Origin: Rhodosorus marinus CCMP1338
Lineage: Eukaryota > Plantae > Rhodophyta
Length of the DNA: 64,000 nucleotides
Direction: 5' to 3'
Assembly: GCA_029953675.1 (NCBI GenBank)
Contig: JAMWBK010000012.1
Span: 1,091,868-1,155,867, forward strand
The first letter of the stretch is position 1; every line of letters begins with the position of its first letter. The position numbers and the translations under genes are program-made. Under the pieces are notes generated by a model. That model ran no database searches, had not been told where the DNA came from, and was given only the letters and a program-made list of their open reading frames with translations. Below, one piece after another: positions 1 to 64,000 of the stretch.

Positions 1-73
1 AATGCGCTGCGGTAGGTAGCTGCCGAATAAAGGCTACTTGGTTATATGCGGTTATGTATGTAGTCTGGGGTTA
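1..73 (+). mobile_element. 3' UTR end of an upstream family A retroelement plus degenerate telomeric repeats
   Basis: gcggtaggtagctgccgaataaaggcta matches the A 3' ends at 42270, 50665, 53450 and 61545-61575 (reverse complement); followed by TAGTCTGGGGTTA (61-73). Confidence 0.8.
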
Positions 74-698
74 AAGGAAAAGTTCGTAAGGAAGACAAAA
101 GCAAAAGTTCGTAAGAGAGTCTGAAGATGATTGTGAGGGAGGTACGCGGGCCGTACCCCGAACCTCTTGTCATTCAGGGCCCGGACCCCTCGGGCACCCG
201 GGAAGTTTTGCAAAGGCACCAGCACCAGTCTGATGGCGACGTGCAGGAGGCACAGAAGGAACCACAAGCAGGCGATGTTCAAGCAAGAACGCGGCCCGAG
301 TCTGCAGCCGCAACCGACCCGGCAGCCACATTCTTGCATCAACTGCGTAGCTTCGACAGATGCTACCAGGACCTGGGCATCGCTGCGTCCGAAATGACAG
401 ACTTCTACAAAGCCGTTTTTCAACTGTACTCGAGGGTCAACAGCTCGCAAGAGCTGCAAGGCGTCACCGGACGCCTTACGGAGTTGTCCCGGAAACCGGG
501 TATGTGGGAAGGTGGAGCCGCTACTACGAATTCTGCACCATCTCCGCATGATCTCCCGCGACAGGCCGTAGGCAACCACCTCGGCCCCGAAACCCGTTAC
601 CGTAACGGTCGTCCGCCAGGAAGTTATGACGTCCATGATTTAGGAACCCGGCTCCCTGCGCCCCAGGGAGGGACAGGTGTCCAGGATCTAGGACACTA

Positions 699-904
699 TG
701 TTAGAACTTGCCCTGACAGCTGTGTAATCTGTGTAAGACACTCCCTACTTTAGTGTAAGACGCTAGTGTGAACTATTCAACAGTTTCTACTTTACTGTCA
801 GGTACGTCTTAGTTTACAGTAGCCAAGACTACATAAGACCTAGCTTTGCTAGATCTTGAAACCTAGAATTAAGTAAAGACAAGTTGGTTAGAAGAGTTCT
901 AACA
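699..904 (+). repeat. 5' LTR (206 bp)
   Basis: TGTTAGAAC...GTTCTAACA terminal inverted repeat; direct repeat of 5123-5351. Confidence 0.97.
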
Positions 905-905
905 G

Positions 906-917
906 TGGTCTCATCGC
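906..917 (+). promoter_or_regulatory. Primer-binding-site-like sequence TGGTCTCATCGC
   Basis: TGG starts 1 nt after the 5' LTR; the cognate tRNA was not identified. Confidence 0.65.
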
Positions 918-993
918 TCAAAGGTTTAAGAGGATACGAACGGAGGGAGGGGCGATCTAGCGGAAGCAGGAGGACTCGAGTAGCCAACTTCAA

Positions 994-1724
994 ATGACTA
1001 CGTTTACTATACCCCCGCCCGAGGCTTACGACGGCAAGCGGGATTTCGTCAGGCTTCAGACGTTCATGGCCTCACTGCGTGGCTACCTGAACTTCCATCA
1101 GGTAGCAGACTCCGGCCGCCAGTCAGTCCAGTACGCGGGACTGTTTTTGAAGGCCCAGGCCCAGGTATGGTACCAGGGTCTTCGGCAGGCGGCGGATGGC
1201 CTCCCGGAGGCACTGGAGTCTCTCGAAGACTTCGGACAGGCCCTGCGAGGACAGTTCGAACCTCACGACCATATCGAGCGAGTCCGGGCCAAACTGCGTA
1301 GCGCTCGACAACGCGGCCCTGATGTCACCCGTTATGTCGACTATCTCGATGAACTTTTCATGCAGTTGGGCGAGTTCATCAGCGACTCTGAAAAGCTTGA
1401 GCATTTTAAGGCGGGCTTGACTGGTCGTGAGCGAGACTTCGTCTACTATGGTCGACCCAAGACCTATGAGAAGCGAAAGCCATCGCATTAAGCCTGGCGG
1501 GTGCCCACGAGATGCCGAAGGAAACGACGAAGGGATCCTCGGATCCACCAAGAAGCAAACCCCGCACAACGTCACCGCGTCGACCACACACTCGAAGCAT
1601 GGGAGCGCCGCCAACCTGCTACCTGTGTCGAGAGATAGGACACGTTAAACGAGACTGCCCCCAACGACTGGCATATTTGCAGGCGGAGGTGGCACGCTTG
1701 TCGAGCCTGCAGGAGGAAAACTGA
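994..1724 (+). pseudogene. gag: Gag (retrotransposon gag domain plus CCHC zinc knuckle), 1-bp frameshift near 1472
   Basis: PPEAYDGKRD and FKAGL gag motifs in 994..1491; CYLCREIGHVKRDC in 1512..1724. Confidence 0.9.
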
Positions 1725-1741
1725 CGGACTCCGGACGAGGG

Positions 1742-4700
1742 ATGCCGTCCGAGAGTCCAACGACCAGCATCCCAACCGTTAGGTTACAGCAACGGGGTAA
1801 TGCAAGCCTAACTGCAATAGGCGTGGTGGCGGCGGAACCGGTGGAATGTCTCATCGACACCGGTGCGGTGACGCCAATTAGAGAGGACGTTGCGAAAGCC
1901 GCCAACCTACCTAGGTACGACGAACCACGGACATACGGGTTGGCTGTCGGTGAGGAGACCGTGATCAGCCCCGGAGTGACGGAGACAACGATCACACTCC
2001 AGGGACGACAATTCAAGACGAAGCTGCGAATATTCAAGCATCTAAGCCATGATGTATACTTAGGTCTCGACTTCTTGAGGCAACATCGAATAACTATCGA
2101 TTGTAGTGCGGAGCCCCCACAGCTGGTACTGGGAGCGGAAGACACCAGCATGCGTGGGATAACAAGTATGGAAACTGAAGAAGAAATAGGGGAGAGGGCG
2201 GGCGCGGTCATCCTGAAAGAGGAAGGCCTAGAGAAAGGCGGAAAGGACCAGGTTGCCGAGGCAGGAAAGAGGTTTGGTGCGGTCATCCGGAAAGAGTTTC
2301 CCCAAGTTTTCCAAGATACATTGCCGTTGCCACCGAAGAACCGGCAACGATATGCACTCAAAATCGAATTGGAACCAGGGGCGAGTACACCAGCTCAACG
2401 CGCATATTCGATGTCACGGGTCGACCGAGAGCGGCTACAAGGAGAATTGCACGACTTGGAAGAGCAAGGATTTATCTCACGGAGCAGAAGTCCGTATGCT
2501 GCACCTGTGTTGTACGTGGACAAAAAAGACGGTGGGCGACGCCTCTGCATCGACTATCGCCGTTTGAACCAGATCACCGTGCGAGAAAGAACGACCCCGC
2601 CTAGAGTGGAGGAGCTATTGGATACCCTGAGCAGCGCTCGGGTTTTCACAACGTTAGACCTTCGCTCGGGATATTGGCAGTTGCCAATTGAACAGGCATC
2701 ACGCGAGAAGACGGCCTTTGTCACGTGCTTCGGACAGTACCAATGGAATGTCATGCCGTTTGGGTTGAAGAATGCGCCCTCGGCATTCATCCGCTACCTG
2801 ACGGACGTATTATATGATCTTCTCAACCAGTGCGTGGTGTTGTACGTTGATGACATTCTGGTATATTCCCCAGATGACATACAACACCAGGACGATGTTC
2901 GAAAGGTGCTACGACGCCTCGAGCAGCATCAGTTGATCGTCAAATACTCGAAGTGCGGTTTTGGATTACGCCAAGTTTGCTACCTAGGCCAAATCTTGGC
3001 GGGAGGCACTCGACGTCCCGATCCGGAGAAGGTCAAAGCAATTCAGAATTGGAGGACGCCAACTACGGTTAAGGAGCTACGGGCCTTCATGGGTTTCGCA
3101 AACTTCTTGCGCCCCTTTGTACCACACTTCGCCCAAGTGGCGGCGCCCCTCCACAGGCTAACGAAGAAGGACCAGAAGTGGGGTTGGCACGCGGACGAAC
3201 AACAAGCCTTTGATGGGTTAAAATCCGCCATATCAGCAACCACCATGCTGTACATGGTTGATCCGATCCTCCCCTTCATCGTGCAAACGGACGCGAGCGA
3301 CACCGGGGTGGGTGCTATCCTATTCCAGACCCGCCAGGATCAGGAGGTGCCCGTGGCGTATATGTCCCGATCCTTCAATAGTACCGAGAAACGCTACACA
3401 ACGTACGAGAAAGAACTCTACGCCATCGTCCTGGCCATCTGCAGGTGGTCCGTGTATCTTGATGGGCAACAGTTCACTGTGCGTACGGACCATAACCCGC
3501 TACGCTTCTTGCAAACACAGACGACATTAACTCGTCGGCAGGCGCGGTACGTGAATATATTACTACCCTACTCCTTTGAGGTTCAATACGTACGCGGCGA
3601 GATAAACGTCGCGGATGCACTGAGTCGCGACGCACTACGAGCCACCCGCGTCACGATGGAAGCCGATTGGACTCCAGAGTACCAAGCCGATCCAGAATTC
3701 TGCACGCAATTTCGAAGCCCGGACCAGTTTGAGGGTTTCCAACGAAGAAAGGGTCTATTATTCCTCCATGCACGACTTTGCGTACCCGAACACCGTGTTA
3801 ATCAGGTCATCGATGGGCACCACCAGTCTCTAACGGCAGGCAATTTCGGCGCACAAGCTACTTACCGTGTTGTGCGACGACGCTATTACTGGCCTAGCAT
3901 GAGGAAAGACATTTTCACGCGCGTACAACAATGCGAGATATGCGCCCGTGAACAACCACTTCGGCGCAACCAGGGCGAGCTGCAACCGCTCGCAATTCCG
4001 GAGAATCGCGCGGTCGACTGGACTATGGACTTCATAATAGGCTTTCCCAGTATCGCGGGTAACGACGCTATACTAGTTGTGGTCGATCGACTCACGAAGG
4101 ACGCCGTATTTATCCCGACGACGAAAATGGTAACCGCGGAAGGAGTGGCAACACTTATCCTGCAACATATCGTCGCCTGGTTCGGATTGCCACGGAGTTT
4201 TGTCACAGACCGCGATCCAGTCTTCACGGCAGCTTTTTGGCGCCACCTAATGCAATTACTGGGCATTCAACAACTATTGTCCACGGCATACCATCCTGAA
4301 ACGGACGGTCAGACGGAGCGCGTGAATCAGACACTTCAAATCATGCTGAGATGCTGCTGTACAAATCGCACGTGGGTGCAGAGCCTCCCGCTACTTCAGC
4401 TGGCGTATAATAATCATCCCTCAGCCAGCACGGGGTATTCACCATATTTCCTGTTAACAGGGGGGCACCCGCGGCTCCACTTGGATGTCTCACTACCTAC
4501 CACGCAAATTGAGAACCTCCCCGATGCCGCTACTGCATTCTCCCAACGACAACAGCGAATTCTTGCAGATGCACGCAAATCACTGACCCTGGCACAAGAG
4601 TTATCTGCGGCATCCGCTAATACTCACCGTCATGCGAAGGTGTTCGACGTCGGCGATTACGTTTATTTGTCAACGAAGAATCTCTAACTGGAGGGCCCAA

Positions 4701-5095
4701 CCCGCTTCAAACCTCGATGGTTGGGCCCGTTTCCCGTTATCGAGAAACAATCTGACGTGGCATACACTCTGCAGTTACCGGATGAGATGCGCATACATTC
4801 GACATTTCACGTTTCCTTGCTAAAAGGTGCCCCTACGTGTCCTCCGAATTCTCCGATGCGGAGTATCCCTCTCCAATCGGATCTCTATTCAACGCTACCG
4901 ATCCTGTCGGTATTGGGGGTCCGCCATGCGGCTAACGGGATCCGACAGTTCCTATGTTATCGCGAAAACGAATCCTGGACTGATGCGACTTGGATACCCG
5001 AGCCGGACTACCCGACCGATCTACAATCTCGACGACGCTTACGACACTACCTCAATTATCGCAAGGTGCTTGACGCGCTACCTTCAACTTCTTGA
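1742..5095 (+). pseudogene. pol: Pol (protease, RT, RNase H, integrase, GPF motif, chromodomain); in-frame TAA at 4685-4687
   Basis: LIDTGA, LDLRSGYWQ, MPFGLKNAP, YVDD, TDAS, HHCC, WTMDF, TDRD, HPETDGQTERVNQ; ORF 4721..5095 is in the same frame (WLGPF, ATWIPE). Confidence 0.95.
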
Positions 5096-5114
5096 GTTTG
5101 CCCCCAAACTCTGC

Positions 5115-5122
5115 GGGAGGAA
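5115..5122 (+). promoter_or_regulatory. Polypurine tract GGGAGGAA
   Basis: Purine run abutting the 3' LTR. Confidence 0.7.
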
Positions 5123-5351
5123 TGTTAGAACTTGCCCTGACAGCTGTGTAATCTGTGTAAGACACTCCCTACTTTAGTGTAAGACACTCCCTACTTTAGT
5201 GTAAGACACTAGTGTGATAGTATCCAACAGTTTCTACTTTACTGTCAGGTACGTCTTAGTTTACAGTAACCAAGACTATATAAGACCTAGCTTTGCTAGA
5301 TCTTGAAACCTAGAATTAAGTAAAGACAAGTTGGTTAGAAGAGTTCTAACA
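5123..5351 (+). repeat. 3' LTR (229 bp, with an extra 22-bp tandem unit)
   Basis: Direct repeat of 699-904 with TGTAAGACACTCCCTACTTTAG duplicated. Confidence 0.97.
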
Positions 5352-6407
5352 CACTATGCGGAGGCATTCCCAGCCATCGGGGCGGGCCCTACAAGGCCAA
5401 CCTTCGCCGAGTTTGCAGCTCAGAAAGAACCAGGGAGAGGAGGAGATGCTCGTTCCAGAAATTCTGGACGCCCCGGACCCCAGACCCAGCAGGCTGCCCT
5501 GCGGCAACTGCACGCTACGGTCGGGGGGTCTGGCTGGGGACCCGATGTTGCTCCAATCCTCGCGACGCTACGGAATGTCCGACCCCCAAGGCTGGATGAG
5601 GTGGCCCTTGCGGACCTTGCAACGGTTCTTTGCAGAGCACTGGGTATGCCCAGCTCTTATGTGGTGCATGTGGACTTTATTGCCTCCCATGCCTGCCTGC
5701 TGTGCCATCCAGACGCAATTCCGATTCTCCAAAGTGCCATCTCCCGAGGAGTTTTCCATACTGGGATTTTCGGATCCTTCACACAAGGACACGCCGATCG
5801 ACAAGTAACTCTTTACACTGGCGCTGGACCCAGACAACCTTCTGGGTTACCTCGAACGTCAGACCATCGCTCCCGGGGATATCGCTGCCCACACGCTGAA
5901 GCGGGCTATCGAGCAGCTTGTCCGCATTCGTTCGAGGAGCCGCAGGCGACAACTCTCCTTCCACACTCTCGCAGCGCTCTACGAGTATCTGGAGGCACGA
6001 CTAGAGCTCCTAAAAGGCAGACAACATCCGCCTGAGGTACCCGGGGAGTGCGCGGAACCCCCTGGGCCTGCAGCCGCTTCGAACGCAGACCCTGCAGCCT
6101 CGTCCCTTCCAGGGGATGTACAGGCAGACCGTGGGACAGTTGACGCCCCGGTTGAGACCAGCGCGACTTCCCAAGTACCTGAGAACGCAGCGCACGAGGA
6201 CAATCCCCACGCGGAGCTCCTCTGCAACCTTCCGGAGCCACCTCAACAGAAGCGCTTGCGAGTATCCGCCGATAGAACCGGACCGGATACTGAGATGACT
6301 CCGGCAGCCGTGGAGACTCCACCGGATACCACTGTGACACAGGTTGCCCTTGACGGCAACCATCACGCGATGGACACGCAGGAGAGCCAGGAAAACCCAG
6401 CGCAATA

Positions 6408-8538
6408 ATGCCGAGCAGACGTAGGGGAATCAAACGACGCCGCGACGAGCCTCTGTTCTTGTCGGATCGTCAAGACTGGATTAGACGGTGGAGCGCCTTC
6501 GTCGACGACGTCACCGAAGGAGGCAGGCAGTGGACGCGCCTCACACACTGCCCGGTTCCCACACGGCGATTTTGTGCCACGCTGCCAGGTCCACACATGG
6601 AGCTGCCTCTTCCGTGCTGCATTAGAGCTCTCTATGGACAGCACCGGACCAACAAACGCCAGCCTGGTTCTTGTCGGACTTCCAGGCCTTGTCCTTGGAC
6701 ACTCTGCACTTGATGTTGGCATTCAGGTATCGCACGTACTTGAAGGAGAATCCTCTACGGTCTGGAGCGCTCTAGAGGACAAGGCGTCTATGCTGTCGCA
6801 TACTACCGCACCGCGAGGAGCTGGAGCGGTTCGACGCAAACATCTCGGGCGCGTTGAAACTAGCACACCTTGGCCGCCTTTCAGATGCAGCTCGGAGCCT
6901 ACAGGCCACCGAAATGGCACCTTTTACGGCGGCTACGTGGAGAAAGCTACAAGCGCTCTTTCCAGACCCGGCAGAAGGTGACTTACCAGACGAGATTGCA
7001 AAAGCCCTGCAATCTTTGCTCGCTCTGAATACCGAAACACTTAAGCGGCGGTGGGATTCAAGAAAAGCGGCCGACGAGGGCTTCATGTCCATCGTGGCAC
7101 GTCTTCCTCAGGGCAAGAGTCCAGGTCCTAGCGGTCTCCGAGCGGAACACCTCCAAGGTGCAACTCAACAGACGCAAGTGGCGTTGATTCGTGTATTGCG
7201 ACAACTGGCGACCGCTCCGGAGAAATTTTCCCCGGCTCTGATCCGTGCCCTTCGCAGCAGTCGACTCCTGCCGTTCTCGAAGCCTAACAAGGGTACAGTG
7301 CCGCAGGAACATCCCGGAGTTCGCCCTATTGGAGTACCAGAAGTTTTGCGCAAGGTAGCAACGCAATGGACTCTTCACGCGGTTATGGACAGGGTGCGTG
7401 AGCTCCTGGTCCCCTTACAACTGGGTATTGGAGTAAGTGGCGGGTGCGAACGCTCACTTCACGCGATCCAGGCCCATTTGTCATGCGAACCCGATTCGGT
7501 GATCCTTCGGCTAGACCTGGAGAATGCCTTTAATCGCATCGACCGACGCCTTGCCAAGCAACTGCTGGACGAGCACTTCCCGGAGCTTGCACCAGTGTAT
7601 AGACTTGCGTCGGTGAGTCCGCGTTGCGCTATGGAAGCAACAACGCGGACTCACCGACGCTCTGTGGCTGGCGATCCTCCCCTGGACAGAACGAAACCGA
7701 CACCTCTCGCCTGACTCTCCAAGCAGCTACAGGAGTCCAACAGGGAGATCCACTGGGGCCGGTGCTACATGCACTATCCCTGGCGCCCTTTCTAAGAGCG
7801 TTGCGAGCCAAGTTCCCCAACGAAACGATTGTTGCTATCCACGACGATATCACGATTGTCGGGTCGCTACAAGCCTTGAAGGCATCCCTGGCATGGGCAA
7901 AAACTGTGCTCCCCTCTCTTGGAGCACGCCTGCAACTCGGCAAGTGCACTGTGTACGGGCGAACACTGACTACCACGCGAGTGGTCAACCATGAAATTCC
8001 CGGAGTCCAAGTGACCAGAGACGGAGTCACCATCCACTCGATACCGATAGGCAGCCGAGAATATATCGAACAGGAGTGCCGGGGGTTGCAAAATAAGCAT
8101 GAGAAACTCTTTGAGGAAATTGCCAAGCTCCCACAACCGGAGCTTACGACGCAAATTGCCCTCTTCAGGTTCTGTGCGGAAACGCGGCTAGACTATATTC
8201 TACGATGCCTCGCATACGAGTTTGGAAGAACTCTTGCACGCGAGGCCGACGTGATGACCAGATATCATCTGGAAATTCTATTCGGAGGCCTCGCTACGAC
8301 AGCTGTAGAGGACGATGAGTACGCAGAGCTGATCTCGGACCAAATCGCTCTGCCCTGCCGCTGGGGAGGGTTGGGTTTCGCTACTCGAAAGCGCGTCCAA
8401 CCCATCGCGTTTTACTCGTCATGGAGAAACACCTTCCGGAACAATGAAGATGAATGGCCATACCTGACTGAACTAGAGCGGGAGGTTTCGGCAGAACGCT
8501 CACCAGACACATACGAGCCGATGGAGCAACGATGGTAA
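6408..8538 (+). pseudogene. Family A ORF2 (RT), frameshifted, lacking zinc knuckle and RLE in this copy
   Basis: Pieces 6408..6713, 6574..6981, 6854..7714 and 7624..8538 carry successive RT motifs; the N-terminal PLFLSDRQDW resembles family B PLFTSDRSAW. Confidence 0.9.
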
Positions 8539-8539
8539 A

Positions 8540-8850
8540 CCACCAGATACTCGGCAGGATGGTTAGTAAAACCGTTTTGAAGCCCTACAAGCTTGGATTT
8601 TCGAGGTGCTCTCAAAGCTAGACTTAAACCTACGTGTGGCGTAATGCGAACTAGCTACGGGGAAACTAAAGCGTACAAACCAAGGCACTGGGAGCGAGTC
8701 TTGGCTAGCATGCAGCTCGAATATCGCCATAAAGCGACACTTACCCGGCATAGCAATACTAGATACTGGGCAGGGTGGTCAGTAAAACATTTTCGATGCC
8801 CTACAAGCTTGAATTTTGTAGATGCTGTCAACTGCGCCTGAGAGCTATGC
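8540..8850 (-). mobile_element. Degenerate family C-like 3' fragments
   Basis: CFTDHPAQYLVLLCRVSVALWRYSS matches the C terminus of family C ORF2. Confidence 0.6.
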
Positions 8851-33120: not shown

Positions 33121-33124
33121 CTGA

Positions 33125-49123: not shown

Positions 49124-49172
49124 GTTATTGCACATCCCGATGGACTCTTGCTCCATCGGGATGTGCAATAAC

Positions 49173-50702
49173 TATTAAGATCAAAAGGGTGTTGCACCTC
49201 CAGAGATTTTGGCACAGCCCGAGCATAATTTTGCATAGCCGGACATTGCTGGAAGGTGGAGACGTCACACACTACGCAGAAGCATTCCCAGTCATCGGGA
49301 CCAGCAGCACACGGACAACGTACGCTCAGCGCACTGTCCAAAATACTCCAGCTCCAGAATCAGAGGCTCAACTCCGACCAGCAGGACGCCCGGGCTCACA
49401 GACCCAGCAGGCAGCGCTGCGACAGCTGCACACCACAGTGGGAGGGTCCTCCTGGGGACCTGAAACCAAACCGATCCTTGCCACCCTTCGAAACGTCCCC
49501 CCCCCCCCAAGGCAGGATGATGTGGCACCTTCGGAATTCACCACCGTCCTCTGGCGCGCGCTGGGAATCACAGCCTCTCACATCGCGCATGTGGACTTCA
49601 TGTTACACACGCAAGCTTGCTCTGCCATCCGGATGCAGTGTGCAAAGCGCTATCGCCCGAGGCGTTTTCAGAACAGGGATCTTTGGATCTTTCACACTGA
49701 GACATCCTGACCGGCAAGTGACTCTCCACACAGGACAGGGATTGGAGGCTGACAACCTGCTGGGCTACAACGAAAGGCAAAGGATCGCCCCAGAGGAGAT
49801 CCCAGCCCAGACGCTGCAACGGGCCATACAACAGATCATCAGGATTCGCGCGAGGTTCGGAAAGAGACGTCTGTCGTTCTCTACTCTCGCAGCCATCCAT
49901 GAAACGCTGGTAGAGCGTCTACGAGCGTTACGAGGCCTGCAACATCCACCAGCGGTCGCCTGGGAGAGTGTGGAACTTAGTCTGGGGTACACGATCGCAC
50001 CGATGTACGGTGTGTGAACAACCACACGACTTCAAAGGGATCCAGCGTTTGCATCATTGTCGCACATCATCAGGTATGCGAACTAAGCGTCACGATGAGC
50101 TAAAAACGGAGTTGAGTCGATGGTTGCATCTGTGGAATTTCACAGACTTGCAAGTGGAACCGCAGGGGTTCTTTAGGTAATCAGGGATACGCCCTGACAT
50201 AGTAGGGAGACACCCAACAAGTGGACACGTGTACGTGTTGGACGTGATGGTGACGTCACCACTGCAGCGACAACACTTGCGACAGACCAGCTGGAAGAGT
50301 GGGTATGCGGCAGAGAAAGCAGAACATAGCAAAGTGGCACATTATGCGGAAGCAATCTCGAATGAGGGGGAGAGAGCTGATTTTAGCACAATTTGTGGTC
50401 GAAACCTATGGGCGACCTGACCAGAAGGGCTGGAGTTCCTTCGAAAAGCCACGGCACATCTCCATGATCGGGAGTCGCATTTATCGCCGGTGAGAGAACA
50501 ATTGAATCGTATCCTATAGCAACACAACGCACAGTTGGTACAACACGCGATTGACAAAGACCGGGCAGACCTGTCGATACTCCCACTAGCTAGAAGTTAG
50601 ATGAGACCCCTGGACAGGGGGTCTATAAGTGAGTTTAGAGCGAAGATAGAGTAGTGGTATTTCGCTACGGTAGTTAGCTGCCGAATGAAGGGTATGGGGT
50701 TA
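49173..50702 (+). mobile_element. Diverged family A-type element with a large internal deletion (ORF1 piece joined to knuckle/RLE), ending in GGGGTTA
   Basis: HYAEAFP ORF1 homology; C..C..HHC, RPDI..LDV; 3' UTR gtagtg...cggtagttagctgccgaat. Confidence 0.8.
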
Positions 50703-53520: not shown

Positions 53521-53958
53521 CGAACGTTAAGGGGCTAACAAGGACAAATATACGATGAGGTTTAAGGAAAGCTTTATGATCGAGAAGGAGATGCTGGGAC
53601 AGTACCCAGAACCTTTCCGCCACCCGGGCACCAATGGCCCTGGCCCAGGCGAAGAGGGGATGGCGACACCGAATGGGAGTCGGATGCCAGAACCGAGCGG
53701 CAGGACCACAATCACCCAGGATTTACAAGCAGCGAACACACAGGAGGCTTACGGGATGGAGACTCAAGAGGCAACTGGACCTGCGGCAGCCTTTTTGCAC
53801 CAACTTCGCGCCTTCGACCAGTGCTATCAGGACTTGGGAATTGGTGAAGCAGTTATCGCGGACTTCTACCAGGCTGTATTCAAACTCTACTCACGGATTA
53901 ACAGCACCACTGAACTCGAAGGAATTACCGCACGTCTCTCCGAGCTTTCAGCAAAACC
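53521..53958 (+). mobile_element. Family A-type 5' fragment (ORF1 N terminus), truncated
   Basis: GQYPEP and AFLHQLRAFDQCYQDLGI...FYQAVFKLYSRINS match ORF 127..753. Confidence 0.85.
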
Positions 53959-53972
53959 TTAGTCTGGGGTTA
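53959..53972 (+). repeat. Interstitial telomeric repeat TTAGTCTGGGGTTA
   Basis: 14 of 14 match to the terminal repeat. Confidence 0.85.
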
Positions 53973-54528
53973 AAATGCGACAGAAACTTTCCACGGTGCA
54001 GACATATCGGAACGGTTTCTTCTCGTCTGGTATTCGGCACTTTTGAGTGGTATTTGCGGCTGGCGCCAAATACCCACGTACAGACGTTTCACCCTGATTG
54101 AACACGGCAAACGCAAAGAACTCAAGTAACCCACAGCACGAGAAGTCCGACTCACCGCGCGGGATCCTGTCAGGACAGATGTCCATTTTCATCCTTAAGG
54201 GCGCAGTGGCCAACTTCCTCTTTGTGAACCTGTTCTTTCCAGTAGGAAGGGGCTCTCCCGCCGTAATGATTCCTGCTCTGAGCTTTCCAAGGCTCAAATT
54301 ATTTCCTTCCACGGTAAATACCGCTCGAAAGCAGCGACTTTCCTTCCTCTCCACAACTGACAAAATTACCGTCCCCAGCATAGTACCATTTCTTGCCAGG
54401 AGGTTAGCATCCAGTCGTTTGGAATCGTAGAACACACCCTCTAACGCATCAGCGCACGTTGGCGGCGCGGACCACGCCATGTCCAAAAGCGCCAGGCTCA
54501 ACGCAACAAGAATGATAACTCTCATCAT
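53959..54528 (-). CDS. Small secreted Cys-containing protein of unknown function
   Basis: Signal peptide MMRVIILVALSLALLDMAWSA; open frame; the last codons come from the telomeric repeat. Confidence 0.72.
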   Translation of the reverse strand: MMRVIILVALSLALLDMAWSAPPTCADALEGVFYDSKRLDANLLARNGTMLGTVILSVVERKESRCFRAVFTVEGNNLSLGKLRAGIITAGEPLPTGKNRFTKRKLATAPLRMKMDICPDRIPRGESDFSCCGLLEFFAFAVFNQGETSVRGYLAPAANTTQKCRIPDEKKPFRYVCTVESFCRILTPD

Positions 54529-55410
54529 ATCACGAGCAAGACTCGACGATGTCAATCCGATCCGTGCCTCTGACTGCTCTCGAAATCGCTACCCTCTCGT
54601 CCAAAAGTCTTCACTCGTAGAAGCTAAAAAGGCTCTCAGCTCCAGCCTAACCGGAGTACCTTTCACGGAAGTGGAGCTTTCCACTCACCTCCCCATCTTA
54701 CTCCGCAGACAATCACCGTATATGTACTGAATGAATGTGTTTATTGGGAGACTGAGAAAGAACTTCGAGGGTGAAAAAGTCTAATACTGGCCAAATTCAT
54801 GTAACTCCGGAAAATACTGGAGTATGCCAAAGCCACCAACTTACAAAGGCGCCCCAAAATCTGGTCCCTTTGGATACACGGTGCTTGAAGACTGCAGTCT
54901 GCAGTCTGCAGTCTCTTAGATGACGTCCGCAAAGGAATTCCAGCACTCCCAACGGTTTATTTCTACTTCGGTAGCCTCATGTTGTGACCGAAAAGCAATT
55001 TCGTCGATGATTTCCCAAAGGAATCGGGCGCTCCCAACGCTTTTTCGTCGATGACATCCAAAAGGAGTCCGGCGCTCCCAACGGCTTTTTATCTGTTTTG
55101 TTCGTTGGATGGGAATGTTGTCGGTGAAAATGTGTTCAAGACGAGCTTGGGAAAAGAGCTCACTAATTCGTTGCAAGGTACCCCTTTCTTGGGACTTGCG
55201 CCGTGCCTGCATATGACCAGCTTCTCGCGCAGGTGGTCGCCGCGTTCCACCCAATCCCCCACACCTCCAATCCCAACCGCCCAACGGCTTTTTTCCTTAA
55301 GAAAGAAACATTTCTTTCACAAATCGATTAATATATTACAATTTATAGCAAAACACGTACTTGTCTTAAATTTATTTCTCCGTATCACTTTATACTATTT
55401 TACATAATAT

Positions 55411-58301
55411 GAATGAATGAATGAATGAATGAATGAATGAATGGTTTAATCGGAGGCTGAAAAAAAAACCCCGAGGGGAAAAAAAGACTAAGCGCGGCGA
55501 AGTACTCGCGCCTCCAACATCAAAGCGGCATTCATGCGCCACAGCAGGAAACTTAAGCGGGTAAACAACGATTGAAGACGGTCAGGGCGTTCGCGGAACA
55601 ACTCCCGAAGCCAGCGAGAACCAACAGAGTCCATGAACCCAAAGCACTCAATGATCAGGGGTACCAAGCGATGTGCTAGTGCCGAAGCACGAACACCAGG
55701 GGAAGACAAAGCCCCCGCGTATTTGATCTCTTTGCGGCGTCTCATGCTGGCGGCGGCAGATCCACGGCGCTCCCCCGCAGCCGGGAGATAACGACTAGCT
55801 TGAGGGTTAGGAACAGCAAGATCAACGTATGTGGTACGGCGGCTGTCGTCACAGGTGATCACCAGATCGGCTACACGGCGTTCATCATTTTGAAAGTCCG
55901 CGACGGGTAAAGGTTTCTCACGTTCGATTTCCAGACCGGCTTGCCGGACTATAGGCCGAAGTTCCCGGTATAACAGGTTCAAGATCCGTGTGTGGCGGCG
56001 GGTTCGAGCACCTTTCACCGCCGGGCAACTAGCGAGCAGGTGGGCGCCAAAATCTGCGTTGTCTTCAGTCTGAGAGCAGAGAGGGCACGACGAACCCATC
56101 TCGTACGGCCAAGGGGGCTGATGTAAGCCGAGGTATAAGCGCAGTGAAGTACGCACTTCGAAATCCGACAGTGTGAGTGGCGGAAAGGCTGGTACGGTCA
56201 TGAGCCACTGAGAGCTAATAACCCCTCCAAGACTACGTAGGCGGGCGCGAGCGCGAGAAGATGAGACCATCTGCGCGAGGAGTCGGCCATATGCAGCACG
56301 GTGCAAGTCCCAAGAAAGGATATTTTGCAGCGCATCCGTGCGTGCTTGAGCTCGGCTCCCAGCGCGCTGGGAATCATCAGGAGGATCAACTGGAACTTCT
56401 TCTTCTGCGGCAACCACTGGGTCAATCTCCCCTAGAACAGGTTCAGGCGCAGGACGAATCCCCGGGGCGGAGCCTCGAGAGCGGTCAAATACAGCTCGCC
56501 AGTCAGGAAGACGGGGTTGAACGGTTTCGGGGAGACTAGTACAGGAATTCAGGGCGGTTTGGAGCTCCAGAAACAAGTCTTGGGCGCTTTCCGGTACGCT
56601 GGGAAGCAAGACACCCCGCGAGAGGCTCGCCATCAAATTGCGGAACTTCGAGATACCCAAGCTGCTCAAAGTGGGAAGTGCGGTTCCCCAGGCCCCTACT
56701 GCAGCTGCAGGTTGGACCACAACACGATTGCAGAGGCCCAGTCCCCCCAATCGCAATGGGAGGCCTACCTGGGCGCGCACAACATCACAGGTGGGTCGCG
56801 GCAGAGCGCTCAGCTCTTCATCGAGAAAATACCCCAGGTCACGGAAACTTTCAGCATCCGCACGAGTGGCCAACCACCGGCCCCAATGAGTTGGAAGTGA
56901 GCGAAGCCAATAGGTTAACCGCTGACTGCAACAATACCGAAACAGCAACAACGAGCACTGGAGAAAGCCCGGAGGTAGCCGTCGAAGCTCTGCAACCAGC
57001 TGTCTGTGCTTACCGAGGAGCTGCAGCAACTCGCCTTCAACGAAGGACGGCGACCCGTAGGGGATGCCTAAGTGGACAAAACCATCCGGTCTCCAAATAT
57101 CCTGGAACGACGCAGGTACCTGCTGCTCTTGTGCAGCTACACCTCCCCAGTAGAACGATTTGTGATGATTAACCTCCAGGTCAACCCGCGAAGCCAAGGA
57201 GCGGAGACGATCATAAGCGAGTGCTAGAGTATCAGGGGGCCCCAGGAGGCACACGTCGTCGTGGTATGCAACCGTACGAACCTGCGGGAATTCGGAGCGA
57301 AGACAAAGCAAGACGAGTTGTAGTCCACAGGCATGTAGGAAAGGGGACAAGGGATCACCCTGTTGTACCCCTGTGCGCGCCGCAAACGTGTGTGAGGAAG
57401 CGCCAAGGGTGTCATAGGTAGCCCCACGACCAAGCGGAGAATAAATTCTACTAACAAAGGGAAAGCCTACAGGGAAGACTTCGCGCACCACGTGCATGAG
57501 AGCCGGACGAGAGACGCGGTTGAACGCATTGGTAAAATCTACAGAGAGGAGCCCAGAATCTGGGGAGAACGCCATTTCCGAACGGAGTAAAACAGACAAC
57601 AACTCACAGCCACCACGATAGCCCACGCCTAACTGCACGTGCCCAAAGAAACGGCGGGATTCGGGAACCAGGATTTTCACTAACCATCGCGCCGCCAATT
57701 TGCGGACCACCTCAACCAGGCCAATAGGGCGAATAGCAGGGCTCGAGGCCGTGTGGCCGGGCTTCGAAAGCAGACACAACTGCGAACGCCCGACCAAGAA
57801 CCACGCACACTCACACAGGGGATCACCATTCACAAGCGCTTCGACCACCCACGCCAACGCCTTCAAACCTTCATCACTTAAGAAACGGAGATATTCCACC
57901 CGCAGCCCCGAGGGCCCTGGGGAACGGCCCTTCGGAGCATCATGAACCAACTCACGCACCGCCTCCAGATTGACCACTAACCGCGCACTGGGATGTGGCG
58001 CGGCGCGGTACTCTTCCAACACTGATTCAAACGAGGAGTCCCAAGGGGAGCCTTCCGAGGGAAAGAGCAAACGGAGCGGTGAAGAAAGATCATCGGAGTA
58101 TGGAACCACAGGTTGCCGCTGCTGGAGGATCCCGGCTGCCCGCCGCAGATCACCGCCTGCCACCGCGTGACGCGCCCGATTCTGTCGAGAAGACCTAAAA
58201 GCTGAGGAAGCACTAGGAGAAAAGGAAGAGAGAGAAGCGAAATAAAGACGTTCGAGGTCCTCAAAGTCGCCGGAAAGGAACATTTGCAGTTTTCGGCGAG
58301 G
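55411..58301 (-). mobile_element. 5'-truncated family B element with (GAAT)8 tail on + and an intact RT-RLE frame (55488..58283)
   Basis: Near-identical to 16460-19320; possible TSD TATGAAT (55408-55414, 58306-58312). Confidence 0.95.
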
Positions 58302-58619
58302 CAGGTATGAATCGTTATATAGTTTTACGCGTTCTGTATTTGTAAATAATATTTAATAATTATCCAGGGTTTCTTTTGTTTGAGGGTCGTACATGTTTTT
58401 TAATAGAATTGTGGGTGGATTGTTTTCCTGTAGGTTACCCCCTTTTTTTTCGACGACGGGGACAGTTGGGGGGGAGAGGGAGGATTCAATCTATAGGGAA
58501 TGGGTTGGATCGGTTGTTTTCTGTAGCTGGGGGATTGGCTGTCAATTATGGCATTCATCTGCTGCATTGCTCCATTATGATTGCTCTATTATTTACATGA
58601 TGGATAGGGCTGGGTAGAG

Positions 58620-58980
58620 TGTGTAATAGCCGGAGAGCTACTTCATGTGGCATGCGCGGTCAGCTATCCCACCTATGGCTAACCACTCTGCCCTGTACAC
58701 CAGGCCAACGACTGGACGCCTTCCAGTTCCGGACTGCGGCACGCATCTTGGGTTTGCCACAGGTCTCTTGGCATTCCAATCGCCCTTCCTTCTGCCAAGG
58801 TTGTGCGCGCCGTAACGACGGATGTGGGTACCATTGTCAGCAAAGAAACCCCTAATGGGTTGTGCGGCTACGTTCTAAGATAGGGACGATGTCATAGTCT
58901 GCTTCGTCGACATGACGAGCCTGGGTGGCAAGGATAGCGTTTCCTTTCCGTAGAGTGCGGTTCAAGATCGCCCGAGCCTC
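58620..58980. mobile_element. Family C-like fragment (+) fused to an inverted family A-type 3' end (-)
   Basis: MRGQLSHLWLTTLP..CQGC; 58838-58975 is the reverse complement of ~63320-63460. Confidence 0.75.
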
Positions 58981-58984
58981 ATTT

Positions 58985-61180
58985 ACTTGGCTTTATTGGA
59001 CTGGACTTTACTAGCATAGCCTGAAGCGCTACGCAAGGCGTGAAGATGAACTAATAACTAGGGAGGGAAGTATGCAACCCCAGGCGCCGATGGCGCGCCT
59101 CGGAAAGCATACTAGCATATTGGCATAGCCTACAGCGCTACGCAAACCGTGAAAAGGAACTAAGAACTAGATAGGGAAGCGTGCAAACCCCGGCAAGCAT
59201 GCTGCCCGAATATCGCCACAGAGAGACACTTAAGCGCCTCAAAAGTTCCAAGTATTCAACAGGATGCTCAGTGAAACATTTCCGCAACAACTCCAAACCC
59301 GACTTCTCCACGTGACCAAAGCTTTCCACAATGAAAGGCTGGAACCGGTGGGAGCGACCCTCAGCGCGAGGCAGGCAGGCCATACTCTCAGCATACCGTC
59401 GTTCCTTCACGCGGCGAAGGGCTGAAGCAGCTGCTCCCCGGCGGCGGGCGGCAGCCGTGAGATGGGGGCTTGCCACAGGGCATGTAATCGCGAGGTCAAC
59501 ATATGCTGAGCGTATGGGGGCAGCATCTCGGACGAGGAGATCTGCGATACAGCGGGGCGGTGCCCTATCCAAGACCGATCTGGGTAGTTCCGATTCCACC
59601 TCAACCGTATGCCCTACCCGAGTCAAACATTCGCTGAGAACGTGCTTGAGGCGAGTCTGACGCCTCGTACGAAGACCTCTCAACAGTCCGCATGAACCTC
59701 AGAAATGGTAACCACAAGCATCGATCCGACTCTCACATCCCTGACAGAAAGACGGCCGATTAGAGTGCCACGGAGCTTGTGGCAAACCCAGGTAAATCCG
59801 TGAGGCAGAGCGAAACTGGAAGGCATCCAGACGGTGACCCAGTGATGACGGCATGGTCGTTAACCACAAATGTGATAGATGGCCTCCCATGCCGCGGAGG
59901 CGAGCGGCGGTGGTAGGCGGTGTGAGTGGAGAGTTGAGCAAGATTGCGTGAGCGGCACTGTGTTGGCCCCAGGTGAGGCTATGTTGAATCACATCGGTGC
60001 GCGAGCTCTACGATCGGCTCAGACCCGGGTAATCGGCAACCAGTGACCCGGGGCTAGCTTCCCCCTCGTCGGCGAGTACTCTGTCGATGGGAGAGTCCTC
60101 GAGCGCCTCAGTTCGTCCCCATAACAGCTCCTTCCAGGAGCGAAATCTGGATCGGCTCTAGTCCGGCACGGCGTTGCACTTACTGACCGCCTGATGCAGA
60201 GCATCATAAATACTCAAAAGCGGTGGCGGAAGGGTCACAGGGTCTTCGCTAGTCAGTGCTCTAGCCAAAAGGCAAGCACTTCGCATTCGAAAACTCACGA
60301 AGGTGCGAAGTGCGGTAGCTCAGGAGGCGACCGCCGCTGCCGAGCATACGAGTCCACGGTCGGCCACTCCAAATCTGCCTAATCGTAAAGGTAGGACATT
60401 CTGGCCACGAATTAGGTCCCTGTCGGGAGCCGCTTCCACATCAAGGGGTTCATCCAGGAGCGTTCCCCAGTGCTTCAGCGTCGCCTCGTCCGCCTTGACT
60501 GCCATCCACGAGCCCCAGTGCGGTGGAAGGCTTCGCAGCCAGTAATTCAGTCGGGGGCCGGCACAAAAGCGGGAGAGCAGGCAGGCCGATTGGAGCATGC
60601 TATCCGGTAGGCGCTCAATGGCGTCGGTGAGCTGCTTATGGCGCGCTAAAACTCGTTCGCAAGAGTCTTGGACAAAGTTTTCACTCCCCAAACCGACGCC
60701 ATGGTGCTCGAGCCCCGCATGTTCACCAAGGGCCCGGAGACTAGGTGGCAGGGAGCCCCTCGAAACTTCACGCGGGCCGAGAAAACGGCATTTTTCGGGT
60801 TACACGGTTTGACCTACTCCACGTGCGAGTGTTTCGATCTGGGTCAGTCCCGGAGCCAAGTACTCAGGAGTGCCCAGTAACATCATGTCGTCATGGTAGG
60901 CACAGATGCGAAGCTCCGGCACCTCAGCCGCCAGTCGCTGGAGCACGAGCTGCCTCGCACATGCGTGAAGTACCGGCCTACAAGGATCACCCTGTTTAAC
61001 GCCAGTACTTGCTGCAAAAACAGATCCCTGTGTTGTCAAGTAACGGAGGCTCCCCCCTCCGTAAATACCGGATAGGAACGGCCACGCCTCCGAGAATCCC
61101 CTGCGAATCACCTCCAAAGCATGCGTCCGCGAGACGCTGTTGAACGCGTTACGGAAGTCAACTACCAAAACGCCCAATGC
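58985..61180 (-). mobile_element. Family C 3' end plus an older C-subfamily ORF2 fragment
   Basis: C tail and 3' UTR at 58985-59110; RLE, LPLRLG, AYHDD, GVKQGDP and VDFRNAFN. Confidence 0.88.
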
Positions 61181-61600
61181 CCAATGCAGATGGGAAAACT
61201 CCGAATGCTTCCAGACAGAAGGGGATGAAGATGTCGTCGTTGTGTTCTCCGATACTGTCACGGTATTGGGACTCTTTAACCATTTCCGCTTTGTGTGCCG
61301 CATACTGTGTCTCCCAAGACGCTTTGTATAGGTGTGTTCTTTGCAACGGCGAGGTCACCTTAACATCGATGACGTAGAGCTTGTCTGTTCGTGGGTGTCG
61401 AGCTAGGATGTCAGGCCCGAGCCGTTTGGTAGTGTCCAGTCGGTTCTACTGTCACTTCTAGTCGCCATTGTCTCAGCACTGTCGCCAGTGCATCCCTGAC
61501 CATATTGTGTCGAAGTGTCCAGCTCCCCAGACTAACGTAACCCCGTAGCCTTTATTCGGCAGCTACCTACCGCAGGGCCATATCACTACTCTATGTACCC
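61180..61600 (-). mobile_element. Inverted family A-type RLE fragment and an inverted A 3' UTR with a telomeric repeat (61525-61544)
   Basis: HLYKASWET..KESQYRDS..PFCLEAFG; CCCCAGACTAACGTAACCCC abuts the reverse complement of gcggtaggtagctgccgaataaaggcta. Confidence 0.82.
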
Positions 61601-61789
61601 CAGACACAAGTGTCCTTCAGCTGCTGGAAACCCTTATTGTAGTCGCCAGTAGTGATTCGTAGTTAGTCAGCTACCTGAGTGTTTAGGATCAAGGTTGGGT
61701 AGGATTAGGGTTTTCGCATCTGCGTGAACGTTTTCCCTAAACCTAAGCATCTCAGAGATAGAACGGCATATATATACGATCCTTGAAGG

Positions 61790-62510
61790 CACCAGGTATG
61801 GTTTGGTTCGAAATAAAGGGTTACGTCGAAGGAACGAACGCTCGTACCTTGCTTTGTTGACATCGATAACAGCGCAGGCTCCAACATCTCCTGTTACATC
61901 TGGTCATTGAGTGTTTTGGGTTGTGATTCCGTTGGCCTTACTGGCTTTCGGGAATCGTCCAACAGTTTGTCCTGAACGTCTCTCGTTCACCCGTCTAAAT
62001 TTCTTGGGGTAGCGCTTCCCTCGTCAATAGTTTCCTCTTTTTTTCCCCTCGGCTTGTTTTGCGTTTGTTTTTCTCAGTCTCAGACACACATTCATTCAGT
62101 TCCGAATGAGGGAGAGCATTGGAAAACTAGTCAATAGGAAAATCTTGGAATTAGAGGCTTCAGCAAAAATTCCAATTTTTTCGTTCGAAATAGAGGGTTA
62201 ACGTCGAAGCAAATAACGCCAAGTACCTTGTTTTGTTGACATAGATAACAGCCCATGCTCCAACAACACCTCCTGTTACCCATCTGGTCATTGAGTGTTT
62301 TGGATTTATGGATTCCCTTGGCCATATTGGCTTTCGGGAGTTGTCCAACGGCTTTACCCTGACCGTCTCTCCTCGTTGTTTACTGTCTAAATTTCTCTGG
62401 AACCAGTGCTGCCCTCGTCCGTGGTTCTTTTTTTCCCTCGCCTTGTTTTGTTTTTGTTTTATCAGGCTCAAACACATTCGTTCAGTTCGAATAAATTGAA
62501 GGAGAGAATT
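61790..62510 (+). mobile_element. Two tandem, degraded family B-like 3' ends
   Basis: Diverged direct repeats 61790-62130 and 62170-62540, ending in ttttttcccctcg...cattcattc or cattcgttc. Confidence 0.6.
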
Positions 62511-62639
62511 GGAAAAATAATCGATAAGAAAATCTTGGAATTTGAGTCCCATTTTTGAGCGCATTTCAATCTGCCAACGGTTTTTTTTCTGGTATTCCAA
62601 GTCGGCCTTTTCGCTGTTTCCCGACTCAGAAGTGGGGTC

Positions 62640-63518
62640 GATTGTGGCACGTCTCCCTCAGGGCAAGAGCCCAGGCCCTAGCGGACTCTGGGCGGAACAC
62701 ATACAAGGTGCAACTCAACATACACAAGTGGCATTGATTCGAGTACTGCGACAACTCGCAACCGCTTCGGAGAAATTCTCCCCGACTCTGACTCCCGCCC
62801 CTCGCAGCAGCAGACTCCTACCATTCGCGAAGCCAAACAAGGATCCGCACCCCAAGAAAACCCCGGCGTTCGGCCTATCGGCGCACAAGAGGTTCTACGA
62901 AAGATAGCGACGCAGTGGGCCCTTCGCGCTGTGGTCGACCGGGTGCGTGAGCTCCTGGTACCACTACAACTCGGTATTGGCGTCAGCGGCGGGTGTGAAC
63001 GCTCGCTACATGCGATCCAGGCCCACTTGTCATGCGAACCTCATTCAGCGGTCCTCAGGCTTGACCTGGAGAATGCATTTAACCGAAGTTCTGGGGGAAC
63101 ACACCTCCACAAAGCGTCTTGGGAGACCGGGTATGCGGCACGGAAAGCGGAAAAGTTTAAAGAGTCCAAATACCGTGACAGTATCGGAGAACATAACGAC
63201 GACATCTTCGTCCCCTTCTGCCTGGAAACATTTGGGCAGATGGGACAACAAGCGAGTGAGTTCCTCAAGGAAGCGACTATACACCTGGATCAGCGGGCAA
63301 CGCAAGTAAGTGAGGCTCGGGCGATCTTGAACCGCACTTTGTGGAAAGGAAACGCTATCCTTGCCACCCAGGCACGTCGTGTCGACGAAGCAGACTATGA
63401 CATCGTCCCTATCTTAGAACGTAGCCACACAACCCATTAGGGGTTTCTTTGCTGACCAATAGGATCCTTATTGCTTCTTAATGGGCTCCAATAGGGAGTT
63501 CTTCAGTAAAGTGTACGC
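62640..63518 (+). mobile_element. Terminal family A-type element: RT N-terminal half joined in frame to the RLE and 3' UTR
   Basis: PQGKSPGPSG...LDLENAFNR followed directly by HLHKASWET...PFCLETFG; the 3' UTR runs into the telomere. Confidence 0.85.
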
Positions 63519-64000
63519 GGTTACGTTAGTCTGGGGTTACGTTAGTCTGGGGTTACGTTAGTCTGGGGTTACGTTAGTCTGGGGTTACGTTAGTCTGGGG
63601 TTACGTTAGTCTGGGGTTACGTTAGTCTGGGGTTACGTTAGTCTGGGGTTACGTTAGTCTGGGGTTACGTTAGTCTGGGGTTACGTTAGTCTGGGGTTAC
63701 GTTAGTCTGGGGTTACGTTAGTCTGGGGTTACGTTAGTCTGGGGTTACGTTAGTCTGGGGTTACGGGGTTACGTTAGTCTGGGGTTACGTTAGTCTGGGG
63801 TTACGTTAGTCTGGGGTTACGTTAGTCTGGGGTTACGTTAGTCTGGGGTTACGTTAGTCTGGGGTTACGTTAGTCTGGGGTTACGTTAGTCTGGGGTTAC
63901 GTTAGTCTGGGGTTACGTTAGTCTGGGGTTACGTTAGTCTGGGGTTACGTTAGTCTGGGGTTACGTTAGTCTGGGGTTACGTTAGTCTGGGGTTACGTTA
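63519..64000 (+). repeat. Telomeric array (TTAGTCTGGGGTTACG)n, about 30 units
   Basis: Homogeneous G-rich tandem array at the window end with one short variant unit; no repeats beyond the window could be seen. Confidence 0.9.

Follow-up and report, generated by a model that had tools for sequence, protein, structure and literature searches.

The window analysed here, a stretch of 64,000 nucleotides (nt) of Rhodosorus marinus DNA, forms the end of a chromosome in this unicellular red alga (Stylonematophyceae), and a retrotransposon that we call family A lies in it in chains whose members are joined by short tracts of telomere repeat. We propose that family A is a lineage of long interspersed nuclear elements (LINEs) with a restriction-like endonuclease (RLE) that targets the telomere repeat, inserting by way of a nick in the C-rich strand with register and orientation both fixed, and that its chains were built by erosion and healing of the chromosome end. 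We put the probability of this reading at about 0.8.

Family A boundaries and the telomere repeat

The window ends in a tandem array of a 16-nt repeat, GGGGTTACGTTAGTCT, which comprises 30.6 copies at 96% matches with the G-rich strand on the forward (+) strand and reaches the window end (Table 1); one short 8-nt unit, GGGGTTAC, lies inside it near 63757-63764. A k-mer scan with the 16-nt unit located internal fragments at 61-73, 42300-42320, 49977-49988, 53480-53522 and 53959-53972 on the + strand and at 39026-39040 and 61525-61544 on the reverse (-) strand, and all internal tracts are 7-43 nt long. The 3' ends of family A were found by a search that is blind to the telomere, a fuzzy match to the conserved motif GTAGGYAGCTGCC.A.TAAAG..TAC, which returned five ends, at 37, 42299, 50695 and 53479 (+) and at 61545 (-); a sixth, that of the terminal copy at 63518, has a variant 3' untranslated region (UTR). 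The full-length 5' ends (74, 42321 and 53523) were defined by homology to the start of the first open reading frame (ORF1) together with a leader of 53-94 nt.

GG(GG)TTA follows directly after all six 3' ends, the one at 38 being degenerate (TTGGTTA), and telomeric bases precede three of three full-length 5' starts and three of three uninterrupted 5'-truncated starts. Every informative family A boundary in the window (12/12) is telomeric, with fixed register and orientation; two further 5' boundaries, at ~41284 and ~62600, adjoin other retrotransposons and are uninformative. The telomeric sequence on the 3' side begins at repeat position G1 or G3 in six of six cases, and that on the 5' side ends at A7 in four of six. 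GGGGTTA occurs only 14 times outside the terminal array, counting both strands (1.1e-4 per position), and both the telomere association and its register are far beyond chance. The first-pass annotation of this DNA had claimed that every intact family A boundary touches telomeric sequence at a readable site in the repeat, and both parts of the claim hold: the internal fragments were recovered exactly where it had placed them, along with three that were absent from its list (49977-49988, 53959-53972 and, on the - strand, 39026-39040), and the junction register is not scattered within the repeat. The GGGGTTA at 50696-50702 is a mere 7-mer, convincing by its position between two elements and not on its own, and of 12-mers like that at 49977-49988, which lies at the exact element boundary, about 0.1 would be expected by chance. 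Two telomere-like 9-10-mers, at 27304-27313 and 42687-42695 (-), were also weighed as possible junctions, but with ~2-8 expected they were put down to chance.

The sense strand of family A is always the G-rich strand, and the 3' end is always directed towards the chromosome tip. In the minus-strand pieces (58835-58990, 61200-61524 and 61545-~61650) the telomere tract is inverted along with the element, and their relative orientation is kept. The head-to-tail chains described at first pass, with the sense strand collinear with the G-strand, were found again, with spacers of 7-43 nt. Two copies retain both junctions: A3 lies between TTAGTCTGGGGT and GGGGTTA, and A4 between GGGGTTA and GGTTACGTTAGTCT. 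The flanks carry a 5-nt duplication, GGGGT at A3 and GGTTA at A4, and in each case the repeat is back in phase once the element and 5 nt are taken out.

Two of the tracts deserve separate mention. That at 38-73 is the oldest, and is degenerate, with changes of the CG-to-TG type (GGTTATG for GGTTACG) that hint at a decay of internal telomere tracts driven by cytosine methylation. The fragment at 39026-39040 (-) is a 15-nt inverted piece, TTACGTTAGTCTGGG, of which ~0.002 would be expected by chance; it is flanked by AT-rich unassigned sequence on one side and by the region of a 391-amino-acid (aa) ORF (37654-38829, weak beta-helix matches only) on the other.

Table 1. Family A copies, telomere tracts, junctions and neighbouring features of the window. 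A slash marks the junction between element and flank; positions count from the first base of the window.
Feature	Position	Strand	Sequence or remark
Family A 3' end, cut by window start	1-37	+	exact terminal motif GTAGGTAGCTGCCGAATAAAGGCTAC at 12-37
A1, full-length 5' end	74-8556	+	80-85% aa identity to MMETSP transcript P0111
Family A 3' part, end of RT through RLE to 3' end	41284-42299	+	5' side abuts family C
A2 5' part, full-length 5' end and ORF1 start	42321-42700	+	resumes at 49123
A2 ORF1 continuation	49123-49976	+	3'-truncated inside ORF1, then telomeric bases
A3, 5'-truncated, divergent subfamily	49989-50695	+	41% aa identity in RLE; intact 3' motif
A4, 5'-truncated within RT	50703-53479	+	RLE ORF intact 52401-53396; 3' UTR 83 nt
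A5, full-length 5' end with ORF1 start	53523-53958	+	3'-truncated
Inverted family A fragment	58835-58990	-	95% identical to 63303-63460 of terminal copy
5'-truncated family A-like copy, in inverted block	61200-61524	-	RLE residues 189-263, 48% identity
Family A 3' UTR fragment	61545-61650	-	exact terminal motif; upper bound approximate
Terminal family A copy	62600-63518	+	variant 3' UTR ending ...CAGTAAAGTGTACGC; 5' side approximate, abuts family B-like fragments
Degenerate telomere tract between two family A copies	38-73	+	ends ...TAGTCTGGGGTTA
Telomere tract, 21 nt	42300-42320	+	GGTTACGTTATTCTGGGGTTA
Telomere tract, 12 nt, after 3'-truncated A2	49977-49988	+	TTAGTCTGGGGT; read as healed break
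Telomere tract between A3 and A4	50696-50702	+	GGGGTTA
Irregular telomere tract, 43 nt	53480-53522	+	
Telomere tract, 14 nt, after 3'-truncated A5	53959-53972	+	TTAGTCTGGGGTTA
Inverted telomere tract	61525-61544	-	GGGGTTACGTTAGTCTGGGG
Terminal telomere array	63519-64000	+	(GGGGTTACGTTAGTCT)n, ~30 units
3' junction	37		GGCTAC/TTGGTTAT..., degenerate
3' junction	42299		GCTTAC/GGTTACGTTATTCT
3' junction	50695		GGGTAT/GGGGTTA
3' junction	53479		GTTTAC/GGTTACGTTAGTCT
3' junction	61545	-	GGCTAC/GGGGTTACGTTAGTCT
3' junction	63518		GTGTACGC/GGTTACGTTAGTCT x30
5' start, full length	74		preceded by ...TAGTCTGGGGTTA, ending GGGGTTA
5' start, full length	42321		preceded by ...TTCTGGGGTTA, ending GGGGTTA
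5' start, full length	53523		preceded by ...GTCTGGGGTTACG, ending GGGGTTACG
5' start, truncated	49989		preceded by TTAGTCTGGGGT, ending GGGGT
5' start, truncated	50703		preceded by GGGGTTA
5' start, truncated	61524	-	preceded by ...GTCTGGGG, ending GGGG
LTR/gypsy insertion in A1 ORF1	699-5351		5-bp target duplication CACTA
Family B	16444-19978, 55427-58352, 39346-40321	-, -, -	RLE LINE, intact 1,140-aa ORF
Family C	42726-49122, 22884-24255, 39190-41282, 59003-61175	-, +, -, -	RLE LINE
Sulfatase ORF	13499-15220	-	host gene; 100% identical to a protein of a contig with NDN08_* genes of R. marinus

Element anatomy and the predicted endonuclease

A full family A element is roughly 4.9 kb long with two ORFs. 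ORF1 of A1 (127-698 and 5357-6408, ~541 aa) is preceded at its N-terminal end by a leader of 53 nt, the 5' UTR (74-126), and its stop codon is overlapped by the ATG of ORF2 as TAATG (6406-6410), ORF2 running from 6408. ORF2 of A1 has a frameshift near 7612-7714 and is lost beyond ~8556; an ORF2 of ~1,050 aa was pieced together from A4 and P0111, an MMETSP transcript (840 aa) that is the closest external match and is 80-85% identical to A1 6408-8556. From this identity it follows that family A is expressed in Rhodosorus. Within ORF2 the reverse transcriptase (RT), with the active site AIHDD, is followed by a C-terminal domain, after which comes an 83-nt 3' UTR. Poly(A) is absent: each of the six 3' ends finishes in ...TAC or ...TAT and runs into GG(GG)TTA, with an AGTAAA or AATAAA motif 6-7 nt before the element end. 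The six copies share the 3' terminal motif and have no long terminal repeats (LTRs), and their 5' ends are either full length (three) or lie within the RT or RLE (three). Consensus folding of the 3' UTR gave two small hairpins; a single compensatory change supports each of them among four sequences, which are too few for a claim of conserved structure.

Pfam recognized RVT_1 in the family A ORFs and in P0111; it found no domain in ORF1, and no informative one in the N-terminus of ORF2, in the ORFs of the segment 53973-55430 or in the 37654-38829 ORF. An Rfam scan of the window and sensitive scans of two 5' junction regions found no processing ribozyme, such as the R2 ribozyme that resembles that of hepatitis delta virus (HDV-like). 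The C-terminal ORF of A4 (52401-53396) carries the motifs C-x2-C...H-x-C, RRHD, EQEPE, RPDII, LDVTV, KKVHY and ETFG. When the domain sequences of family A were aligned with those of 13 distant homologues and of the related families B and C, columns of C, C, C, H and K proved invariant and those of H, R, E and D near-invariant. A profile of the domain run against the whole PDB matched R2 proteins only, in their C-terminal endonuclease region (9nl3, 9dou, 9nl2, 8gh6 and 8ibw; E = 4e-12 to 3.5e-6); the alignment-built profile was needed, as phmmer with the family A C-terminal ORF alone gave no match in the PDB. The seven best Foldseek matches of an AlphaFold model of the domain (pLDDT 84, pTM 0.81) were all R2 structures, followed by Prp8 and viral cap-snatching PD-(D/E)xK nucleases, and the RT of the related family B has R2 as its best PDB match and then L1 ORF2p. 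Profile and modelled fold together give a solid prediction that the C-terminal domain of ORF2 is a CCHC motif plus a PD-(D/E)xK R2-type RLE, in agreement with the RLE call made at first pass. No apurinic/apyrimidinic endonuclease (APE) domain was found: P0111, which covers the N-terminus of ORF2, gives RVT_1 only, and the ~300 aa before the RT have no Exo_endo_phos match.

The copies and the origin of their flanks

From 41284 to 53972 the array consists of the 3' part of one family A copy, a 21-nt tract, A2, a 12-nt tract, A3, 7 nt, A4, 43 nt, A5 and a 14-nt tract, A2 being split by an array of family C inserted at 42700-49122. Host genes lie between the two family A clusters. The last 5 kb of the window are rearranged, with inverted family A and telomere pieces followed by family C, B-like and A fragments, and end with an internally deleted family A copy that abuts the live telomere and in which the RT motif is joined to the end of the RLE domain. 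That this terminal copy was 3'-truncated and then healed was considered and rejected, given that the deletion is internal, that ORF2 still has its C-terminal end and that the 3' UTR is genuine. A4 holds a recent local duplication with inverted segments (50884-52710), in which 50884-51639 and 51638-52550 are 98-99% identical.

One explanation for such a region is that family A is not site-specific, and that units of element plus tract spread between chromosome ends by recombination, break-induced replication or tandem duplication, so that the flanks are inherited. In its favour, the region is heavily rearranged, with inverted blocks (58835-58990 and 61200-61650) and the duplication and inversion in A4, and host genes separate the two clusters. 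The copies themselves argue otherwise. Truncation points and spacer lengths differ among all of them, which excludes simple duplication of one element-plus-tract unit, and truncation point and tract length differ in every junction pair; three distinct 5' truncation points each abut telomeric bases. Identity to A4 in the RLE region is 86% for 41902-42216, 48% for 61200-61421, 43% for the terminal copy and 41% for A3, with families B and C at 23-28%, and the ratio of non-synonymous to synonymous substitution rates (dN/dS) between copies is 0.08 in the RLE, 0.10 in the RT and 0.31 in ORF1. These low ratios indicate that most of the divergence accrued under selection, in active lineages. Copies that are 41-86% identical at a dN/dS of ~0.1 diverged as active lineages and not as duplicates, which makes inherited flanks improbable, and diverged active subfamilies of family A share the telomere target.

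Another possibility is that the element RNA itself carries the telomere-like bases, much as MoTeR1 has telomere-like repeats at its 5' end, with insertion anywhere. The constant 3' junction register might then be read-through copied from a donor locus, and an identical 3' motif stands in a non-telomeric context in L001, a 4.2-kb JGI transcript of a Rhodosorus-like organism with 47% aa identity to family A. We consider this very unlikely, as copies that start inside the RT or RLE (49989, 50703 and 61524) are still preceded by telomeric bases, which must therefore derive from the target and not from the element; the terminal copy continues into the 482-nt array, and tract length varies from 7 to 43 nt.

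Proposed mechanism and history of the arrays

We propose that the RLE of family A would nick the C-rich strand opposite the step from T16 to G1 or from G2 to G3, and that the freed C-strand 3'-OH would prime cDNA synthesis at the 3' end of the RNA (...AGTAAAG..TAC), where read-through telomeric bases may help the RNA to pair with the target. A cut in the G-strand ~5 nt downstream, after GGGGTTA, would leave the 5-nt duplication; a 5-nt stagger, in which the C-strand is nicked ahead of G1 or G3 and the G-strand 5 nt further along, fits the flanks. With the 3' end facing the tip, terminal erosion or breakage would strip the 3' parts of distal copies, telomerase would re-cap the stump and new copies would insert, to give head-to-tail chains with short spacers. 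On the mechanism established for target-primed reverse transcription (TPRT), the observed orientation would require an internal endonucleolytic nick in the C-strand, because natural priming from the G-overhang gives the opposite orientation. The 3' truncation of A2 and A5 points to erosion or breakage with healing by telomerase, since TPRT does not truncate 3' ends and these face the tip. At 49976/49977 and 53958/53959 the healed tracts start at one register, TTAGTCTGGGG... (TTAGTCT), after ...AAC and ...ACC, and both look like de novo telomere addition from a fixed template position.

The least credible alternative is attachment to chromosome ends independently of an endonuclease, as in HeT-A/TART or endonuclease-deficient Penelope-like elements, with telomerase adding repeats in between: the arrays do lie at a chromosome end and the two 3'-truncated copies are followed by tracts of the one register TTAGTCT that resemble de novo addition, but priming on the G-overhang puts the 3' end towards the centromere, whereas every copy here has it facing the tip, no conserved catalytic column has been lost from the endonuclease domain, and telomerase extension of a ...TTAC end predicts TTAC/GTTAGTCT where TAC/GGTTACG is seen.

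Several observations weigh against telomere targeting by a C-strand nick as we propose it. All junction and copy counts come from the one 64-kb window, and no copy is intact within it. Zinc-finger or Myb DNA-binding motifs at the N-terminus are typical of RLE-bearing LINEs. In family A, no N-terminal zinc finger or DNA-binding domain was found by Pfam or by a search for Cys/His patterns in the ORF2 N-termini of P0111 and L001, which as a comparison of sequence leaves room for a divergent domain. Within a tandem array of 16-nt units, a duplication of 5 nt looks the same as a deletion of 11 nt, so that the nick sites are inferred; the 5-nt duplications at A3 and A4 are what is seen of the staggered cut duplicating about 5-7 nt that the first-pass annotation had suggested. 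The fixed 3' register could be set by pairing of the RNA with the target instead of by the position of the nick, and such pairing of read-through RNA has been proposed for SART1 (PMC7265360). That all internal tracts are of 43 nt or less needs an extra assumption, either a preference for proximal repeats or a loss of long tracts; in Magnaporthe, internal telomere tracts of more than three repeats are prone to break (PMC7367193). L001, whose ORFs overlap as ATGA and whose first 113 nt are 90% identical to family C, is the sole external relative with a 3' flank, and its 3' motif is followed by 57 nt of non-telomeric sequence; the wider lineage may not be all telomeric, or the contig may be chimeric. 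Finally, a scan of JGI metagenomes and transcriptomes with the telomere 18-mer GGTTACGTTAGTCTGGGG gave one match and no read-through transcripts, the single match being rejected as chance since it is a non-repeated occurrence in an unrelated contig.

Beyond insertion at a fixed register, a more specific history of this chromosome end can be put forward as a tentative and rather doubtful extension. Several deeply diverged subfamilies would be specialised on the one register and on the C-strand nick, with insertion preferring the proximal edge of freshly healed telomeres, and the subtelomere would have arisen from cycles of erosion, healing (TTAGTCT...) and reinsertion. If this were true, the element would have co-evolved with an altered telomerase template, and its endonuclease would be a natural enzyme with a long, well-defined recognition site.

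Comparison with known elements

MoTeR1 of Magnaporthe oryzae, FoTeR of Fusarium oxysporum and Cnl1 of Cryptococcus resemble family A in having an RT with a C-terminal RLE and no LTRs, in being embedded in telomere repeats as head-to-tail arrays with short tracts, and in being remodelled by breakage and re-capping (PMC7367193, PMC12857005). In orientation, however, family A mirrors MoTeR and FoTeR: the 5' ends of MoTeR elements are always nearest the chromosome end (PMC7367193) and FoTeR 3' ends are followed by TAACCC, so that the sense strand is on the C-strand (PMC12857005), whereas family A has its 3' end to the tip and G-strand repeats after it. It differs from all three fungal elements in its two ORFs with the TAATG overlap, its red-algal host and its 16-nt target in place of TTAGGG, and from the MoTeR/FoTeR type in that no telomere-like variant repeats or variable number tandem repeats were found in its three full-length 5' leaders (from 74, 42321 and 53523). 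Cnl1 forms subtelomeric arrays but can insert elsewhere.

SART1Bm of Bombyx mori (R1 clade) sits, like family A, at a fixed position inside double-stranded telomere repeats, with its sense strand on the G-rich (TTAGG) strand and with a nick in the C-strand (PMC7265360). SART1 carries an N-terminal APE and a poly(A) tail, which joins the TTAGG strand, in contrast to the C-terminal RLE, the absence of an APE match and the absence of poly(A) in family A. Both have two ORFs, and those of SART1 overlap as UAAUG, the same overlap that A1 shows. The likeness to telomere-associated LINEs drawn at first pass is thus a partial one, as the orientation of SART1 is shared and MoTeR and FoTeR lie opposite; family A is best described as having a SART1-like working mode with an enzyme of the R2/MoTeR type. 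R2 (Bombyx, Taeniopygia, Platysternon) has a homologous endonuclease domain, judged by profile and predicted fold, and shares the precise 3' end without a required poly(A) and the site-specific TPRT proposed here, but it is a single ORF with N-terminal zinc-finger and Myb motifs that targets 28S rDNA, whereas family A has an ORF1 and a telomere target. The trypanosomatid elements CRE1/CRE2, SLACS and CZAR target the spliced-leader gene and not the telomere. These elements end in poly(A), and the family A ends do not. Among the distant matches of family A is one named 'SLACS reverse transcriptase', which together with the automatic LINE/CRE label that the genome paper gives to the bulk of the LINEs may hint, indirectly, at membership of the CRE clade. 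Terminal addition of HeT-A/TART leaves the 3' end towards the centromere, opposite to all family A copies.

The R. marinus genome paper describes an assembly of 31 Mb whose 13 large contigs include 12 with one telomere or more; the RepeatMasker table of its supplement lists 4036 copies of LINE/CRE-SLACS amounting to 2.82 Mb or 9.04% of the genome, and neither its main text nor its supplementary text mentions the telomere repeat or telomere-specific elements (PMC10250338). A review describes information on red-algal telomere sequences as mostly missing or fragmentary (PMC7046594). A literature search for the 16-nt repeat, on both strands and in all rotations, gave nothing relevant, and no paper reporting GGGGTTACGTTAGTCT was found. 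Telomere-specific LINEs are known from insects (APE type) and fungi (RLE type), and also from Giardia and Chlorella; here an R2-type endonuclease would be joined to a SART1-type orientation, in a red alga with a 16-nt repeat. This would show that targeting of the telomeric C-strand arose independently with both types of endonuclease. The length and asymmetry of the repeat allow junctions to be read to the single base, and cut sites and telomerase start registers can be inferred directly from them. The system would also lend itself naturally to testing whether a retrotransposon's target specificity has co-evolved with a changed telomerase template. R2-family proteins are under development as site-specific gene-insertion tools, with which a relative whose recognition sequence is long and simple could usefully be compared.

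Neighbouring elements

Families B and C are related RLE LINEs of the same window, and their flanks are non-telomeric. The copies of family B share 99.3% identity, terminate in (GTTC)n or (ATTC)n and have dispersed, unrelated flanks; this family was probably active recently and is probably not site-specific. Two short B-like 3' fragments stand in tandem at 61802-62546. Family C is ~35% identical to family B in protein, and its copies are 97-99% identical to each other. It forms a head-to-tail minus-strand array inside ORF1 of A2, each copy ending in (AGTAAAGTCC)n, with 10-nt tails, and the 3' UTRs of families C and A are homologous, with ...GCGTAGCGCT.CAGGCTATGC.AGTAAAG in common.

The LTR/gypsy element inserted in ORF1 of A1 (699-5351) has an open 981-aa pol ORF (protease, RT, RNase H and integrase), and its LTRs are ~96.6% identical over 175 bp aligned. 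Directly after the tract TTAGTCTGGGGTTA, at the register of the family A 5' junctions, begins a segment of ~1.5 kb (53973-55430) that resembles none of families A, B and C. On its minus strand is an ORF of 198 aa that starts like a signal peptide and has no Pfam match; the segment may have arisen as an end fusion, as a fragment captured from the host or as a passenger that is non-autonomous. A 1-kb inverted duplication (24255-25257 and 28573-29575), 99.1% identical, has arms that flank ~3.3 kb and each contain a 232-aa ORF with a Spondin_N domain; public assemblies gave no record for an exact look-up of a Spondin_N ORF protein. A degenerate satellite of 9-nt units, (TTTTACACT)n, occupies ~500 bp at 32604-33116, beside LINE fragments of B-like and other kinds.

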